DNA from: Octopus sinensis
Lineage: Eukaryota
NCBI RefSeq assembly: GCF_006345805.1
Contig: NC_043004.1
Span: 72,168,001-72,232,000, forward strand
Reading direction: 5' to 3'
DNA length: 64,000 nt
Positions 2,433 to 61,101 of the stretch are shown piece by piece. The notes below the pieces were generated by a model. The model made no database searches and was not told the DNA's origin. It saw only the letters and a program-made list of their open reading frames with translations. The position numbers were made by a program, and so were the translations under genes. The stretch's first letter is position 1. Each line of letters starts with the position of its first letter.

Positions 2433-2524
2433 GTGAAAAGTGGCAGAAAGTGTTTGTGATGACCGAGAAAGCATTTAAAAAAAGTCCTCTCTATTTATAC
2501 TGGGACAGTTTGCCTATTGAAAAG
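2433..2524 (+). CDS. Paralog 1, coding exon a (92 nt, phase 1 to 0) of an uncharacterised multi-exon gene
   Basis: tgttgcAG|gt...gaaaag|GTaaaa; open frame (G)EKWQKVFVMTEKAFKKSPLYLYWDSLPIEK; 17/30 aa identical to 48172-48263 with the same length and phases. Confidence 0.9.
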
Positions 2525-2949
2525 GTAAAACATTTTTTTGAAATTTCGAAATGACTCATTTAATTGACAACTTTTCAAGTCCATGTTTCTTTTCTTATTT
2601 TAATGCATATCTGTTTCATAACTAGATTATCCAGAGTTCTAGTATCCGACGAGTATAATCTGAGAGAAATATAGCTTCTATTTCTAGAAGGTGATATGAC
2701 CATATAGAAACTCGTTTTGTTGAAAGATGTTGACAGTAGAAGGAAATGTTGCATGAGATCATATCAAATAGTGTAAAAGATTTTTCTATTAGGTTGTTAA
2801 GAAATTTCTTGCGGAATATTTAATTTTGGTTTTAGATGATGTATTTTCAATTTCATTTTCGTTAAAATACTATGACTTTATATATAAAACCCATTTTTCG
2901 CTCTATCTAATCGTGTCGCTCTTTTTCTTTTACAATAGTTAGGCCATTT

Positions 2950-3780
2950 TTTCCGGAACGTTGAATACAACATGGAGAAAAAGCAAATTTGCACAATTTT
3001 CTTATTCCAGTTCAAGCTAGGACAAAAACCTGCTGAAACAGCTCACGAGATCAACGATGCGTTTGGCTCAAGAACCACTAATGAACGTACAGCACAATGG
3101 TGGTTTAAGAAAGTTCGTAGCGGTGACGAGAGTCTTAAAGATGATAAGCGTAGTGGTCGGCCATCGGATGTTGACAACGATCAACTAAGAGACTTAGTCG
3201 AAGTCAATCCACGCACAACTTTTCGAGAGCTTGCTTCTGAATTAAACATAATGTATACGACAATTTCCAACCTCTTGAAAGAGATTGGAAAAACAAAAAT
3301 ACTTGAGAAATGGGTGCCGCACGAATTGAACGACAACCAAAAAAAACGTCGTTTGGAAGTGTCGTCTTCCCTTCTTTTACACAACAAGAACTACCCGTTT
3401 CTCGGCCGGATTGTGACTTGCGATAAAAAGTGGATTCTTTACGACAATCGGCGATGCTCAGCTCAGTGGTTGGACGCCGAAGAAGCTCCACGGCACTTCC
3501 CGAAGCTAAAGTTGCACTAAAAGAAGGTCATGGTGACTTTTTGGTGGTCTGCGGCCGGTCTCATCCATCACAGCTGTTTGGATCCAGGCGAAACCATTAT
3601 GGCTGAGAAGTACTGTCAGCAAATGGATAAAATGCATAAGAAACTCTGACAACAACATTCAGCATTGGTCAATAGAAAAGGGCCATGTCTTCTCCAGGAC
3701 AACGCTCGGCCGCATGTTGCACAACTGACCCTACAGAAGTTGAACGAATTGGGCTACGAAACTCTGCCTCATCCTCCATA
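2950..3780 (+). mobile_element. Mariner transposase relic, 3'-truncated
   Basis: ORF 2972-3520 with WVPHEL and VTCDKKW, then LLQDNARPH and HPPY, cut by (TA)n; internal stops. Confidence 0.9.
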
Positions 3781-3794
3781 TATATATATATATA

Positions 3795-5140
3795 TGGTGT
3801 CAGATAATAAACACATAGAAATAATAGGCAACGCTCTCAGCGACTACGGAGCGGTTTCAGGAGCGATGATTAACTAAGAAAAATCAGTGGCCTTGCGGCT
3901 TGGCACTTGGAGAAGCAAATCCATGCCGTCCAACTGCATCTTTGGGCGCTGATTGGACGGGCCGGTTAAATTGCTCGGGGTCTGGTTCGGACAAAAACTG
4001 GAACGAGGTAACGAACAGGGTGGTTACTCCCACTCAGAAATTGGCCGAGAAAAAGCTATCCCTGAAAGGACGTGCAAGATGGTTAACGCGTACATCGCGT
4101 CCGTCATCAACTATCGCTTGACCATCGTGCCTTGTGCCGGTCACCCTCTGATTACGTTGCAGTGTATACTCTTCTGATTCTTCTGCCGTGATTGATGACG
4201 CACAGGCATGCGCTGAGGCTTCGACATCTCCAGTGCTTCCTTGACAATGAACAGGTGGGGTCGCCGTTCGCCAGATACGTATTTCCACAGCTATTTTCTT
4301 TAACGTAGCTTCAGTCCTGAGTAAAAGACAAACCGACGGGAGGCATTTAAGAAGTGAAATATCTTCAAACGCTCACAGCTCTCAGCCAGTTGAAACCTGC
4401 GATAGGTGGAACGTCCACGTAATCTTTCTATAGAGGATTAGTAGAGGGAAAGTACGACGACATTGTTGGAGAGACGTTGGGCGTCGAAGATTAACTAGCC
4501 GCTCTTTTCGGGAGAACTTTCGACTCAGGACCAAGCTACCGGGAAGCTTTGCCTGTTCGAGATATACTATATTGGCACGGAAGTACCGTCAGATGAGCAC
4601 GTCAGAGATGTGCGCAGGATGACGAGACTTCCTGCATGCACTGGTCCAATGTCCGAGCATTGTTGGTATGTGGGTTCGTGCTGAACGCTTGCTGTCGCGT
4701 GTAGAACGGGTCCAGCTATCAACAGGATCCATCGTGAAAATCGCCCTGCCGCCTTCCTTTAACTGAGAATGGGAGGCTCTTTTTAGAGCCATTGCGAAAG
4801 AGGTTGTATAGTGGACGAGACTGAAGGAAATGAAGACAAATGCTTTTCTCTTTGGCCAATCCCTGATGAACTTCACTTGAAAAGAAAAATAAGGGTAGAG
4901 AGGGAAATGTTACCTTCTAGCCAGTTTGCTGAAAGGTGGATGAAAGTCCGTTCACTCGCACCTGCCCTGAGCACACCCTGCAGTTGTAGAAAAGGAAATG
5001 AACAGAGGAACCTGCACCAAAAGTCAGGGTATTATAATTATGGCCGGCATACTATACAGACATGGAAATTTGAAGCTCCCGAAGTTGAAATTGGGTTTGT
5101 AATCTGTCCGGCCATCTAAGGCCCTATGTTTTTATTTTAT
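3795..5140 (+). mobile_element. Tx1/L1-clade LINE 3' fragment, degenerate
   Basis: GPVKLLGVWFG, KNWNEV...LSLKGRA and NAYIASVINYRLT peptides across frameshifts. Confidence 0.7.
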
Positions 5141-5299
5141 TGTTACTATAGCATTTCTGAGTTTGTCTGGACTGCGCAGATAGTATTTTAGTGTAGAAAC
5201 ACCCCCTGTAGGAGGTGTGCAGCAATAATTTTCGAATCATAACTTTCGAAAAAATAATATTTTACTGTTTTTATTATTCAATTAAAGATGGCTGATAAA

Positions 5300-58260: not shown

Positions 58261-59126
58261 GTATGAAGAATGTATCATTCTGTTTCTGAGTGCAAATAAT
58301 AGTATGATAGTATGTTTGTATATACATATATATTATGTGTGTCTATGAGTATATATATTTGTCTGTATGCATATATATATATATATATATATACAGAGAG
58401 AGAGAGAGAAAGAGAGAGAGGTGGGGGTTATAAGAGGTAATGGTGTCAATAAGACCGAAAGGTGTCAGGTAATGCTGAGTAAGTGTTATGGACAGACTAT
58501 AGTTAAGTGTCAGGTTCGGTGATTATGTGAATGAAGAGTCCAACGTAGGTCATATCTCAGAAAAACATTTTCAGAATAAGATAAAAATCCAAGGCTGTGA
58601 AGGATTTTAGAACATTTATAAATAGAAGGTCTCACAGCTGTTTCAAGGATATTTTATATATCCCTTCATCGGAGACGGTGCGAGAGAATGGTTAAGCAAT
58701 AGTTATTTTAGATAAGATATGAAATAGAGAGTGAAGTGGAGGAATGAAAACAGAAGTGAGATATGCAGGGATATTGAATCTGTAGATCCATTATTTAGGC
58801 AGAATGGTTTACATATAAGATTCTAGTACCTTGTGAGTAAGTTCCAATAGTATTTAAAATTGGTCATTCCAAGTATAGAGTTTGTACACGGTGTTATTGA
58901 ATCGAGGGTTTTATTTAAAGTGACTTAATAGTTGGGAATGTATTTGTAAGATGAAATCGAAAACAGGAAGGGAGGAATAAAGAAAAGAAAAAGAAGAGTA
59001 GAAAAAAGAAGAAAGAAAAGCGGGGAGAAAGATAATAAAGAGATGAAGAGAAGGAAAGTGTGCTGGTTAATGGTCAGTCAAGATAAATTGATAGAAAGAA
59101 TGGGAAGATGTGTGTGTGTGTATGTG

Positions 59127-59415
59127 TGGAGGCGCAATGGCCCAGTGGTTAGGGTAGCGGACTCGCGGTCGTAGGATCGCGGTTTCGATTCCCAGACCGG
59201 GCGTTGTGAGTGTTTATTGAGCGAAAACATCTAAAGCTCCACGATCCCTGCTGTACTCTTTCGCCACAAGTTTCTCTCACTTTTTCTTCTGTTGGCCTGC
59301 TCGCTTAGCCAGCGGGGTGGCATCATTTGACGGCTAAAAAACAATGCGAAGCGCATTGTGACCAGCGATGTGTAGCAACATTTGATAGCCTGGTCGGTCA
59401 CGGTGATCACGGTGA
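59127..59415 (+). mobile_element. tRNA-derived SINE
   Basis: tggcccagtggttag...ggtttcgattcc head, non-tRNA body, (TA)n tail. Confidence 0.8.
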
Positions 59416-59824
59416 TATATATATATATATATATATATATATATAAAGGGATCTAACGTATTACATTTAATTTAATTTGAGAATTAATTTCCTTAGACAA
59501 TTTATTATTTAATTATTAGGTGGTATATTTATTATGTAATATTAAATTTTAAGTTAATTAGGTATTATATTAGTTGATATTTAGTCAACTATGTTATAGA
59601 TTAATATATCAAATCTATAGATACTACACATGTACATTAATTATGTAGTTAGCTTATTTAATGAGTCTGTCTATATTTGAACCATTTCTTATTTTGATTA
59701 CAATTTAATGACTTGTACTAACATTGTATATTTTAATTAATTTTAAAGTATTTGATAATTTTTGTTTTAGTTTTCACTTATGTATATTAAGTATATATAT
59801 ATATATATATATATATATATATAC

Positions 59825-60272
59825 TATTTTACTCTTTTACTCGTTTCAGTCATTTGACTGCGGCCATGCTGAAGTACCGCCTTTAGTCGAGCAAATCGAC
59901 CTCGGGACTAATTCTTTGAAAGCCCAGTACTTATTCTATCGGTCTCTTTTGCCGAACCGCTAAGTGATGGGGATGTAAACACACCAGTATCGCTCGTCAA
60001 GCAATGCTAGAGGGACAAACACAGACACATAAACATATACACACACATACATATATATATATATATATGTATATATATATATATATATATATATATATAT
60101 ATATATATATATGACAGGCTTCTTTCCGTTTCCGTCTACCACATCCACTCACAAGGCTTTGGTCGGCCCGAGGTTATAACAGAAGACACTTGCCCAAATG
60201 CCACGCAGTGGGACTGAACCCGGAACCATGTGGTTTGTTAGCAAGCTACTTACCACACATCCACTCCTGTGC
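59825..60272 (-). mobile_element. tRNA-derived SINE with an internal (TA)n expansion
   Basis: Minus strand: ggcacaggagtgg...gggttcagtccc...ttgggcaagtgtctt...; tail ends gagtaaaagagta. Confidence 0.8.
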
Positions 60273-61051
60273 CTATATATATATATATATATATATATAT
60301 ATATATATATATATATATATATATATATATATATACTAATGTATATTTATTAATTAATTTATTTATTATTCTAGTTTATTTTGAACCTGATGAGTGGCTA
60401 TATTTATATCGAAGTGATTTTACTACTACAATAATTATTTCTTAAATATAGCCACGAAACACGTGTCGTTATTCTACCTATTATATACGTTTTTATTTAT
60501 TTTTTTTGCAATTTACTTAATCATTGATATTTTATTGTTATTTTAATTTTAATATTTCTATTATATATAATTTTCTAGAGGGTGTAATTTAATTGTTCAT
60601 TTTTAATTGATAAAAGGTGGGGGTTTTTCTAATTATATATATATATATATATGTGTGTGTGGTGTGTGTGTGTGTGTGTACAAAAAGCGTAGATATATAT
60701 ACTTATAGATACATACATATATACATACATAGACAGACAGCCAGGCAGGCAGATAGATAGATAGATAGATAGATAGATAGATAGATAGATAGATAGATAG
60801 ATAGATAGATAGATAGATAGATGGATGGATGGATGGTTGGATGGATGGATGGATGGATGGATGGGTGGATGGATGGATGGATGGATGGATGGATGGTTAT
60901 TCCCTGGTTTGTGTGCATGGCATATACGTATCTTTGTGCGTGTTAACATTCATACAGATATGTATGAATGTATGTATATATCGAATCATGATCATTGAGA
61001 AATACAGATAACTTCATAAATCTTTAACAAATTTTACCTTTTCTTTTCCAG

Positions 61052-61101
61052 GCAATGAAATACTTATAAACGAATTGGTCATCTCAGTCCTTTTCAAGTA
61101 G
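61052..61101 (+). CDS. Paralog 2, terminal coding exon d (50 nt to TAG)
   Basis: cttttccAG|gc aat gaa...ttc aag TAG; (G)NEILINELVISVLFK*. Confidence 0.85.

Follow-up and report, generated by a model that had tools for sequence, protein, structure and literature searches.

A 64,000-nucleotide stretch of DNA (the window) carries, with very high probability, two separate and adjacent genes of a tandemly arrayed, Octopus-restricted family; this confidence applies to their identity, gene structure and family membership. The explanation that best accounts for the results as a whole, and which we consider moderately probable, describes an Octopus-only secreted recognition family, represented here by two neighbouring members, with a diversifying beta domain and, in one of the two, loss of the exon encoding the secretion signal and PAN domain.

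Both genes lie on the + strand. The C-terminal domain of gene 1 is encoded by exon A (2433-2524, 92 nt, entered in phase 1, with AG/GT boundaries and an open frame), exon B (11279-11427, 149 nt), which bears the conserved block F-x-F-[DN]-G-x-G-T-N-x-T-S-W, exon C (15892-16001, 110 nt) and the terminal exon D (19688-19737, 50 nt), which ends in a TAG stop and is followed 19 nt further on by an AATAAA (19756-19761), a candidate poly(A) signal by consensus match only. The corresponding exons of gene 2 are exon A (48172-48263, 92 nt; orthologous to L002 13148-13239 and L003 22036-22127), exon B (54186-54334, 149 nt), exon C (58151-58260, 110 nt) and terminal exon D (61052-61101, 50 nt, TAG stop), the last three likewise having counterparts at loci L002 and L003; here the candidate AATAAA, again a match to the consensus only, is found 178 nt past the stop (61279-61284). 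All eight acceptors are AG after a polypyrimidine tract, all six donors read GT(A/a), and each spliced 401-nt sequence is open in just one frame. The two sets of four exons with identical lengths, matching phases and AG/GT sites, which the first-pass annotation had proposed, were recovered at the same positions, together with both open 133-aa C-terminal regions. The peptides P1 and P2 were located exactly as written in + strand frames, and their opening residue 'x' is Gly, formed by the G of the upstream exon and GT or GC. They share 43% identity over 133 aa each (BLASTP E 9e-34), and the described lack of Cys and common TN[S/A]TSW sequon are correct for these segments. Exon D of gene 1 with about 240 nt of its flank is about 70% identical to exon D of gene 2. 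A search for a third copy of the domain exons within the window found none. The window edge cuts off the 5' part of gene 1, whose upstream exons lie beyond the window start, and a search of positions 1-2432 for its start exon and PAN exon found neither.

The earlier description of the pair as uncharacterised is apt, and the exact P1 and P2 proteins, looked for in a 5.8-billion-protein collection, are both absent from it; these genes are not orphans, as annotated relatives exist in Octopus. They belong to a family whose other members, annotated 'uncharacterized' or 'Apple domain-containing', occur in O. bimaculoides (LOC106874575, LOC106876620-625, LOC106867736), O. sinensis (LOC118764386-388) and O. 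vulgaris (CAI9725114) only. BLASTP of P1 and P2 against family members gave E values of 1e-27 to 1e-55, and the best family match was P0001 of O. sinensis (E 1e-56). Homologues in three Octopus species answer the doubt, raised with the original proposal, that other cephalopods might have none. The suggested kinship with secreted mollusc and cnidarian proteins was not found: a scan of 1.84 billion representative proteins returned 33, which belong to Octopus save for multidomain proteins of Branchiostoma, the sole distant relatives, and a few matches confined to the PAN region or to repetitive sequence. No literature on this Octopus family was found.

The window genes share with the family the C-terminal domain (with identity reaching 64% in gene 2 and 53% in gene 1), the exon lengths and phases and the organisation in tandem arrays. 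The 92/149/110/50 structure is found again in O. bimaculoides and O. sinensis, at loci both orthologous and paralogous, with identical exon lengths across four loci in three genomes. In the family tree gene 2 falls into a clade with LOC106874575 and LOC118764387/388 (support 100/97), and it corresponds to, and is collinear with, LOC118764387 of O. sinensis and LOC106874575 of O. bimaculoides. The 3' flank of its exon D is 98% identical to O. sinensis. No gene of the O. sinensis array is a clean 1:1 orthologue of gene 1, whose exon A shares 74% amino acid identity with exon A of P0001.

The 133-aa regions are indeed C-terminal; they represent merely one domain of a longer architecture. A full-length family member comprises about 245 aa, encoded by a 13-nt start exon (MNLKG), an exon of about 324 nt in phase 1-1 for the signal peptide and a PAN/apple domain, and the four domain exons. 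The signal peptide is judged only from sequence and from a low-confidence N-terminal helix. The profile PAN_1 was matched by 10 of the 28 family members (best E 2e-5), and one member, P0029, exceeded the PAN gathering score with 25.0 against 21.4 (Pfam PF00024 / PF14295). The AF2 model of another, P0049 (pLDDT 82), matched with its N-domain the PAN of plasminogen (Foldseek probability 1.00, rmsd 2.3 A) and apple 4 of FXI (probability 0.99). This assignment applies to the family and not to the window, which is without the PAN exon. PAN modules act outside the cell and bind proteins or carbohydrates. The fold and Cys pattern of the family's N-terminal domain are those of PAN/apple proteins such as the plasminogen/HGF N-domain, factor XI, prekallikrein and apicomplexan microneme lectins, e.g., SML-2; there, PAN occurs in combination with proteases, kringles or additional PAN repeats, whereas its partner in the Octopus family is one uncatalogued beta domain.

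Gene 2 has kept the start exon of this architecture, which the first-pass reconstruction, accurate for exons A-D, had missed together with the phase 1-1 module formed by exons A, B and C (351 nt). Its coding part (35157-35169, +) reads ATGAATCTTAAAG before the donor gtaag, encodes M, N, L, K and the first nucleotide of the G codon, and ends in phase 1, in agreement with the MNLKG opening of the family proteins. It is a unique pattern match in the window, and its flanks are near-identical to those of the start exons at L001 297 and 47785 and L002 7948 and 28647. The conserved upstream region and 5'UTR (34900-35156, +) entered a five-way alignment with two copies each from L001 and L002, in which the window copy is about 29 nt shorter immediately before the ATG than the four other copies.

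Downstream of the start exon the signal/PAN exon, which the Octopus orthologues carry, is missing. Gene 2 is collinear with L003 (86-94%) and L002 (78-88%), and window positions 33800-37942 are 90% identical to L003 5547-9695. Collinearity with L003 ends at 37942 (L003 9695) and restarts at 38755 (L003 12991); the intervening L003 9696-12990, about 3.3 kb against 0.8 kb in the window, contains an intact signal/PAN exon, and the gap lies at the same place relative to L002 and L001. The family PAN HMM, run over both strands of the window, gave nothing (best E 0.2). At the site expected for this exon the window has a replacement segment (37943-38754, +), whose left junction lies in a (TA)n(GA)n microsatellite, and the missing exon could be an assembly error at this point. 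The segment also holds a partial ORF similar to the GIY-YIG ORF at 46842-47213. Since the missing exon is of phase 1-1, the start exon remains in frame with exon A, and the predicted product of gene 2 would be 137 aa long, lacking both signal peptide and PAN domain; the N-glycosylation sequon that it shares with gene 1 may consequently go unused. In O. sinensis LOC118762874 the PAN exon is frameshifted and exons A-D are intact, and a start without PAN has also been modelled in O. vulgaris. As an accepted member has likewise lost this exon, we treated its absence from gene 2 as secondary loss and not as non-membership.

The domain exons of gene 2 evolve fast. Their dN/dS was 1.18 between the window and O. 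sinensis, 0.83 between the window and O. bimaculoides and 1.34 between O. sinensis and O. bimaculoides, and values near 1 taken alone do not separate positive selection from relaxed constraint. The domain exons diverged by 20%, about twice the 10.7% of the introns (Fisher p 3e-7), and no indels were observed where 6.3 were expected at the intron rate (P 0.002). Taken together, these three features make diversifying selection on the domain exons probable, although part of the exon-over-intron excess could stem from gene conversion between paralogues. Within the domain, core blocks under strict conservation are interspersed with hypervariable patches, and the enrichment of variable sites in loops was marginal (p 0.07).

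As assembled, gene 2 cannot be secreted and so may be a young pseudogene, whose function ended with the loss of the signal/PAN exon and whose downstream exons have had no time to decay. The deletion directly 5' of the ATG and a dN/dS of about 1 fit such a history, as does the frameshift in LOC118762874, according to which decay of the PAN exon recurs. We nevertheless consider it unlikely. All splice sites and the 401-nt frame of gene 2 are intact, and the lack of indels would have a probability of 0.04 even if the window lineage alone had been neutral since the split. This lineage is not accelerated either (39 vs 29 lineage-specific changes, p 0.27), and dN/dS is no lower between the two orthologues that keep the PAN exon (1.34). 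The retention of intact exons A-D in LOC118762874 and the PAN-less start modelled in O. vulgaris also speak against a dead gene.

The C-terminal domain of about 130 aa is all-beta, absent from Pfam and free of Cys in most members, P1 and P2 included. Its domain-only AF2 model (pLDDT 91.3, pTM 0.85) has 11 strands and one short helix, and in Foldseek the fibrinogen-like domains of ficolin, ANGPTL3 and FGL1 made up about 20 of the top 50 matches (probability up to 0.95, TM 0.40-0.48, all with E >= 0.04 and rmsd 7-10 A, the query being about 90 residues shorter). This resemblance is the sole recurring structural match, yet it is sub-threshold, and membership among the fibrinogen-related domains (FReDs) is unsupported. 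Fibrinogen_C (PF00147) gave no match at E <= 10 for P1, P2 and the amphioxus repeats, nor at E <= 0.1 for the 28 family members, and a profile search against PDB sequences found no FReD chain. Fibrinogen-related lectins (ficolins, FGL1, angiopoietin-like) measure about 220 aa, and the conserved disulfides of FReDs have no equivalent in most octopus domains.

In amphioxus (Branchiostoma) the related repeats occur in extracellular multidomain proteins, e.g., XP_078667427, with four repeats, EGF, FN3 and ZP, and CAH1238943 ('HMCN1'), with two repeats, EGF_CA and a C-type lectin. They align end to end with the octopus domain and have core blocks in common with it (phmmer E 3e-14 and 2e-8); they differ in being about 185 aa long, with two Cys-containing insertions, and in standing in large mosaic proteins with no PAN partner, and they are likewise uncharacterised. 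A match of the amphioxus protein P0022 to Pfam PF25538 (DUF7922; 32.1 bits, cut-off 25) was rejected as the sum of four partial matches covering profile positions 94-125 only; octopus members and single amphioxus repeats gave no match to this profile.

We tentatively propose that the family functions in secreted recognition, a suggestion that remains doubtful and to which the extracellular context of the amphioxus relatives, where the domain stands beside EGF, FN3, ZP and C-type lectin modules, lends some weight. The family proteins would then be secreted binding or recognition molecules in which PAN/apple might serve as a generic protein- or carbohydrate-binding module, and the beta domain would carry the surface that sets specificity and diversifies rapidly, in the manner of lineage-specific repertoires for innate-immune recognition. 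The array may evolve by birth and death, recurrent loss of the PAN exon included. By analogy, snail FREPs may be compared with the Octopus family, being secreted, lineage-expanded and fast-diversifying.

The family may also be real and act elsewhere, in gamete or egg-coat recognition or as a component of saliva, venom or mucus. Fast evolution, arrangement in tandem and confinement to a lineage are just as characteristic of reproductive and venom proteins, and one amphioxus relative bears a ZP module; the sub-threshold structural lead points instead to ficolin-type lectins. No result separates these roles from immune-type recognition, and we judge them rather improbable. Going beyond the secreted recognition proposed here, one may speculate, at some distance from the data, that the beta domain is an ancient uncatalogued extracellular recognition module common to octopus, a lophotrochozoan, and amphioxus, a basal chordate, perhaps a minimal relative of fibrinogen-type lectins, that the octopus arrays form a positively selected secreted repertoire against non-self, and that PAN-less, signal-less copies serve as a derived intracellular or decoy form. 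If true, the octopus repertoire would resemble snail FREPs or amphioxus VCBPs in function, and copies like gene 2 would not be dead genes.

That the window holds a single gene carrying the domain twice in tandem, with exon C of the first set spliced to exon A of the second and the first exon D serving as an alternative terminal exon, is quite improbable. Such a splice would keep the frame, as exons A, B and C form a phase 1-1 module; the second set has no signal/PAN exon of its own, P0001 is arranged exactly in this way, and NCBI models O. sinensis LOC118764386 with 402 aa and two domains. However, between its halves the P0001 model passes over a start exon (L001 47785) and a PAN exon that looks intact (L001 53192-53515), and its first half is followed by no recognisable D exon, so that it resembles two neighbouring genes fused into one. 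Full-length members of about 245 aa contain one domain. In the window the first set terminates in a stop of its own with an AATAAA 19 nt downstream, and gene 2 begins with a separate start exon, preceded by about 250 nt that are conserved across five copies in three genomes. The original reading as a tandem pair is borne out, since a separate terminal exon with a stop and an AATAAA close by is present in each gene, and gene 2 also possesses the conserved start exon and upstream region. Finally, although the window is rich in transposon debris and microsatellites, chance open frames or transposon-derived fragments in place of host genes are refuted, with next to no probability left to them, by the canonical splice sites, the exon lengths identical between loci, the strength of the homology and an arrangement that is single-copy and collinear with the orthologous loci.

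Both peptides proposed in the first-pass annotation, P1 and P2, match + strand frames of the window exactly, and the exon boundaries claimed for them were borne out. The four domain exons A to D of gene 1 lie at 2433-2524, 11279-11427, 15892-16001 and 19688-19737 and those of gene 2 at 48172-48263, 54186-54334, 58151-58260 and 61052-61101, all on the + strand and measuring 92, 149, 110 and 50 nt in both sets. All acceptors are AG preceded by a pyrimidine tract, all donors are GT, and TAG closes each last exon; exons A, B and C together form a 351-nt module of phase 1-1. The spliced products share 43% identity (BLASTP E 9e-34). 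The agreement of the two exon sets is far beyond chance in this AT-rich window (34.5% GC), where microsatellites and transposon fragments are abundant and no third copy of the set occurs. The exon reconstruction and the reading as tandem uncharacterised genes both hold, as far as they were given; the start exon, the N-terminal architecture and the exon loss described below had been overlooked.

Neither P1 nor P2 matched Pfam families or PDB sequences. In a collection search with an X-padded query, of which the real region alone was scored so that longer proteins became candidates, the O. sinensis protein of LOC118764386 (P0001, 402 aa) was retrieved with E 1e-56. When 1.84 billion representatives were scanned with P0001 by HMMER, only 33 hits were obtained. 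By source name they are proteins of Octopus bimaculoides, O. sinensis and O. vulgaris labelled "uncharacterized" or "Apple domain-containing", besides two distant Branchiostoma multidomain proteins and a few proteins that matched in the PAN region only or were repetitive. O. sinensis LOC118764387 and LOC118764388 came in addition from a profile search. Full-length members comprise 234-250 aa and consist of an MNLKG start, a hydrophobic signal-like segment, a Cys-rich region and, last, the Cys-free domain. Pfam PAN_1 matches the Cys-rich region in 10 of 28 members (best E 2e-5), with the database protein P0029 above the cut-off. In the AF2 model of another member, P0049 (pLDDT 82, pTM 0.76), this region resembles the plasminogen PAN domain (probability 1.00, rmsd 2.3 A) and factor XI apple 4 (probability 0.99). 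The family is thus apparently confined to Octopus, with distant relatives in amphioxus, and the tie to secreted mollusc and cnidarian proteins that the sequence pattern had suggested was not found. A literature search found no mention of the family loci, accessions or C-terminal domain. The two window genes had not been annotated and are new to a family that is already present in public databases but has never been studied.

The 13-nt coding part of the gene 2 start exon was located at 35157-35169 (+), where ATGAATCTTAAAG, followed by the donor gtaag, has its single occurrence in the window. Its flanks are nearly identical to the start exons at the O. sinensis and O. bimaculoides loci, and some 250 nt upstream show conservation across five copies drawn from three genomes; in the window copy about 29 nt are missing immediately 5' of the ATG. 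The start exon and the conserved upstream region therefore identify gene 2 as an independent gene and not an extension of gene 1. AATAAA motifs stand 19 nt 3' of the gene 1 stop and 178 nt 3' of the gene 2 stop.

From 32.7 to 61.9 kb the window is collinear with O. bimaculoides LOC106874575 (L002; 78-88% identity) and with O. sinensis LOC118764387 (L003; 86-94% identity), and the protein tree places gene 2 in a 100/97 clade together with these two genes. The signal/PAN exon is intact at L003. The alignment of the window with that locus breaks at 37942 (L003 9695) and restarts at 38755 (L003 12991), so that 3.3 kb carrying this exon are swapped for 0.8 kb in the window. A (TA)n(GA)n microsatellite forms the left junction of the replacement segment, which also contains part of an ORF similar to the GIY-YIG (Penelope-type) ORF at 46842-47213. 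The same gap appears when the window is compared with LOC106874575 and with the LOC118764386 locus (L001). Searches of the window for a PAN exon by tblastn with three PAN sequences, by DNA blastn and with the family HMM (six frames, both strands) were all negative; a weak match at 27561-27632 (E 0.2-5) was attributed to chance, having no DNA similarity to PAN exons and lying outside the collinear position. These comparisons show that gene 2, as assembled, has lost its signal/PAN exon. Because the lost exon was of phase 1-1, the start exon still joins exon A in frame (MNLK-G-NKWQKV...), and the product would be a protein of 137 aa devoid of signal peptide and PAN domain.

The four domain exons of gene 2 have kept their frame, and substitution rates were estimated across them. 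Between the window and O. sinensis dN was 0.243 and dS 0.206 (dN/dS 1.18), between the window and O. bimaculoides 0.257 and 0.311 (dN/dS 0.83), and between O. sinensis and O. bimaculoides, where the PAN exon is kept in both, 0.245 and 0.183 (dN/dS 1.34). The exons diverge from O. sinensis by 20% in nucleotide sequence, and 2.9 kb of the intron beside them by 10.7% (odds ratio 2.1, p 3e-7). At the intron rate 6.3 indels would be expected in the 401-nt frame, and none was observed (P 0.002). The differences sit in patches separated by fully conserved blocks, and the enrichment of variable sites in predicted loops versus strands is merely marginal (p 0.07). As judged from these substitution patterns, the data indicate that gene 2 is a functional coding sequence, probably under diversifying selection, to which gene conversion between paralogues possibly contributes.

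Gene 2 may be a working PAN-less variant. That it is a young pseudogene is a less likely reading; the window lineage displays no acceleration (39 vs 29 lineage-specific changes, p 0.27). The gap may also be an artefact of assembly at the microsatellite junction.

A further O. sinensis locus, LOC118762874 (product P0013), is modelled as MNLKG joined directly to the domain. Its signal/PAN exon is present in the DNA (L004 9300-9710), frameshifted and with its first Cys lost, which makes the locus a second and independent example of decay of this exon beside intact domain exons. The two-domain NCBI model of P0001 (402 aa, L001 10001-70349) skips, between its halves, both a start exon at L001 47785 and an open PAN exon at L001 53192-53515; a terminal 50-nt exon after the first domain set of L001 was not detected. 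Two neighbouring genes have probably been fused in this model. At LOC118764386 the three 5' coding exons are found in two copies about 5.5 kb from each other (L001 4472-6530 vs 10001-12071, 83-98% protein identity), through either a local duplication or a duplicate in the assembly. At LOC118764387 the canonical acceptor of exon A (L003 22016-22036) reads cGG and not cAG, and the NCBI model takes an in-frame AG 9 nt upstream, by which three residues ("IVS") are added.

As for gene 1, no start or PAN exon was found in 1-2432, and the intron between PAN exon and exon A spans 3-12 kb in relatives; the window edge therefore cuts the gene. A search for upstream exons by paralogy (1-2432 vs 19738-48171) matched a SINE-like repeat alone, in several frames. 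The protein tree leaves the placement of gene 1 unresolved, and its assignment as positional orthologue of the second half of LOC118764386 was not accepted, collinearity being merely patchy (67-83%). The DNA 3' of its last exon (19589-30484) is collinear (66-80%) with L002 20707-25619, 3' of the last exon of LOC106874575, and the duplication unit of the array therefore takes in the intergenic spacer. Together the loci show a family whose members stand in tandem arrays and turn over.

A domain-only family member was modelled with high confidence (pLDDT 91.3, pTM 0.85) as 11 strands and one short helix; no match of the model in PDB was significant (all E >= 0.04). Among the top 50 structural hits, about 20 are fibrinogen-related lectin domains (L-ficolin, M-ficolin, ANGPTL3, FGL1), with probability up to 0.95, TM 0.40-0.48 and rmsd 7-10 A. 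Pfam, PDB-sequence and profile searches assigned the domain to no family with significance and gave no sequence support for this link; the octopus domain contains no Cys and falls about 90 residues short of a fibrinogen-related domain in length, so the predicted resemblance is treated as a lead and not as membership. Matches of these searches to Autotransporter (E 0.04), Ig/Fc-receptor (E 0.2-1) and insecticidal 16-kDa protein (E 0.12) were regarded as noise. Repeats of the amphioxus proteins align with the octopus domain over its full length, differing by two Cys-containing insertions, and are combined with EGF, FN3, ZP or C-type lectin modules, a context that supports an extracellular role of the domain. 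An apparent Pfam DUF7922 assignment on one amphioxus protein was rejected as an artefact, being the sum of four short partial matches and disappearing for single repeats.

Full-length proteins of the family would be secreted and N-glycosylated, with the PAN and beta domains serving as binding modules and the variable patches of the beta domain setting specificity in some recognition process. Exon divergence twice that of the intron, dN/dS of about 1 or higher, a strictly kept frame and core blocks alternating with variable patches form the usual signature of recognition molecules in an arms race. As first choice of role we infer immune-type non-self recognition; the proteins may instead serve gamete recognition or have a salivary or mucus role. 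Cephalopod genomes hold many lineage-specific gene families without assigned role, and this one is clearly delimited by a single architecture and a single exon plan. Since the domain lies outside Pfam and PDB, has a confident in silico fold and finds relatives among amphioxus mosaic proteins, it is tractable for a domain entry and a structure, which such an uncatalogued, confidently folding and fast-evolving domain merits. Of practical use are the gene model flagged as probably fused in the annotation of O. sinensis and the demonstration that automated annotation misses or truncates short-exon genes of this sort. The finding is solid but moderate; no new kind of system is described, and the role of the family is an inferred one.

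Mobile elements are scattered through introns and flanks. Mariner/Mos1-like (HTH_48, Transposase_1) and Tc1-like (DDE_3) transposase fragments lie at 2972-3520 (+), 45111-45638 (-) and 62659-63249 (-). Three ORFs of GIY-YIG endonuclease type and Penelope-like appearance lie on the + strand at 46842-47213, 38240-38767 and 20756-21154, and the first alone reaches Pfam; the second, which adjoins the PAN-exon breakpoint, resembles it by eye. A reverse-transcriptase fragment (RVT_1, 29.5 bits, just below the cut-off) occupies 49221-49913 (+), inside the first intron of the domain region of gene 2. At 40918-41670 a very long low-complexity tract (AT/ATT/AAT-type; poly-I/N/Y in all frames) falls in a region that has no counterpart at the orthologous loci. 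A short interspersed repeat of about 150 nt occurs in several orientations at 1537-1927, 20209-20381, 47832-47979 and 50940-51101, one copy standing about 200 nt upstream of gene 2 exon A, and is found also in L001 and L002 (e.g., L002 21697-21860). Finally, within 871-1350 a near-identical ORF piece (CQKIHHDYFFHLGVYKMSCSYTYKFVYNNMK) begins at 871 and again at 1246, about 375 nt having been duplicated locally in tandem.
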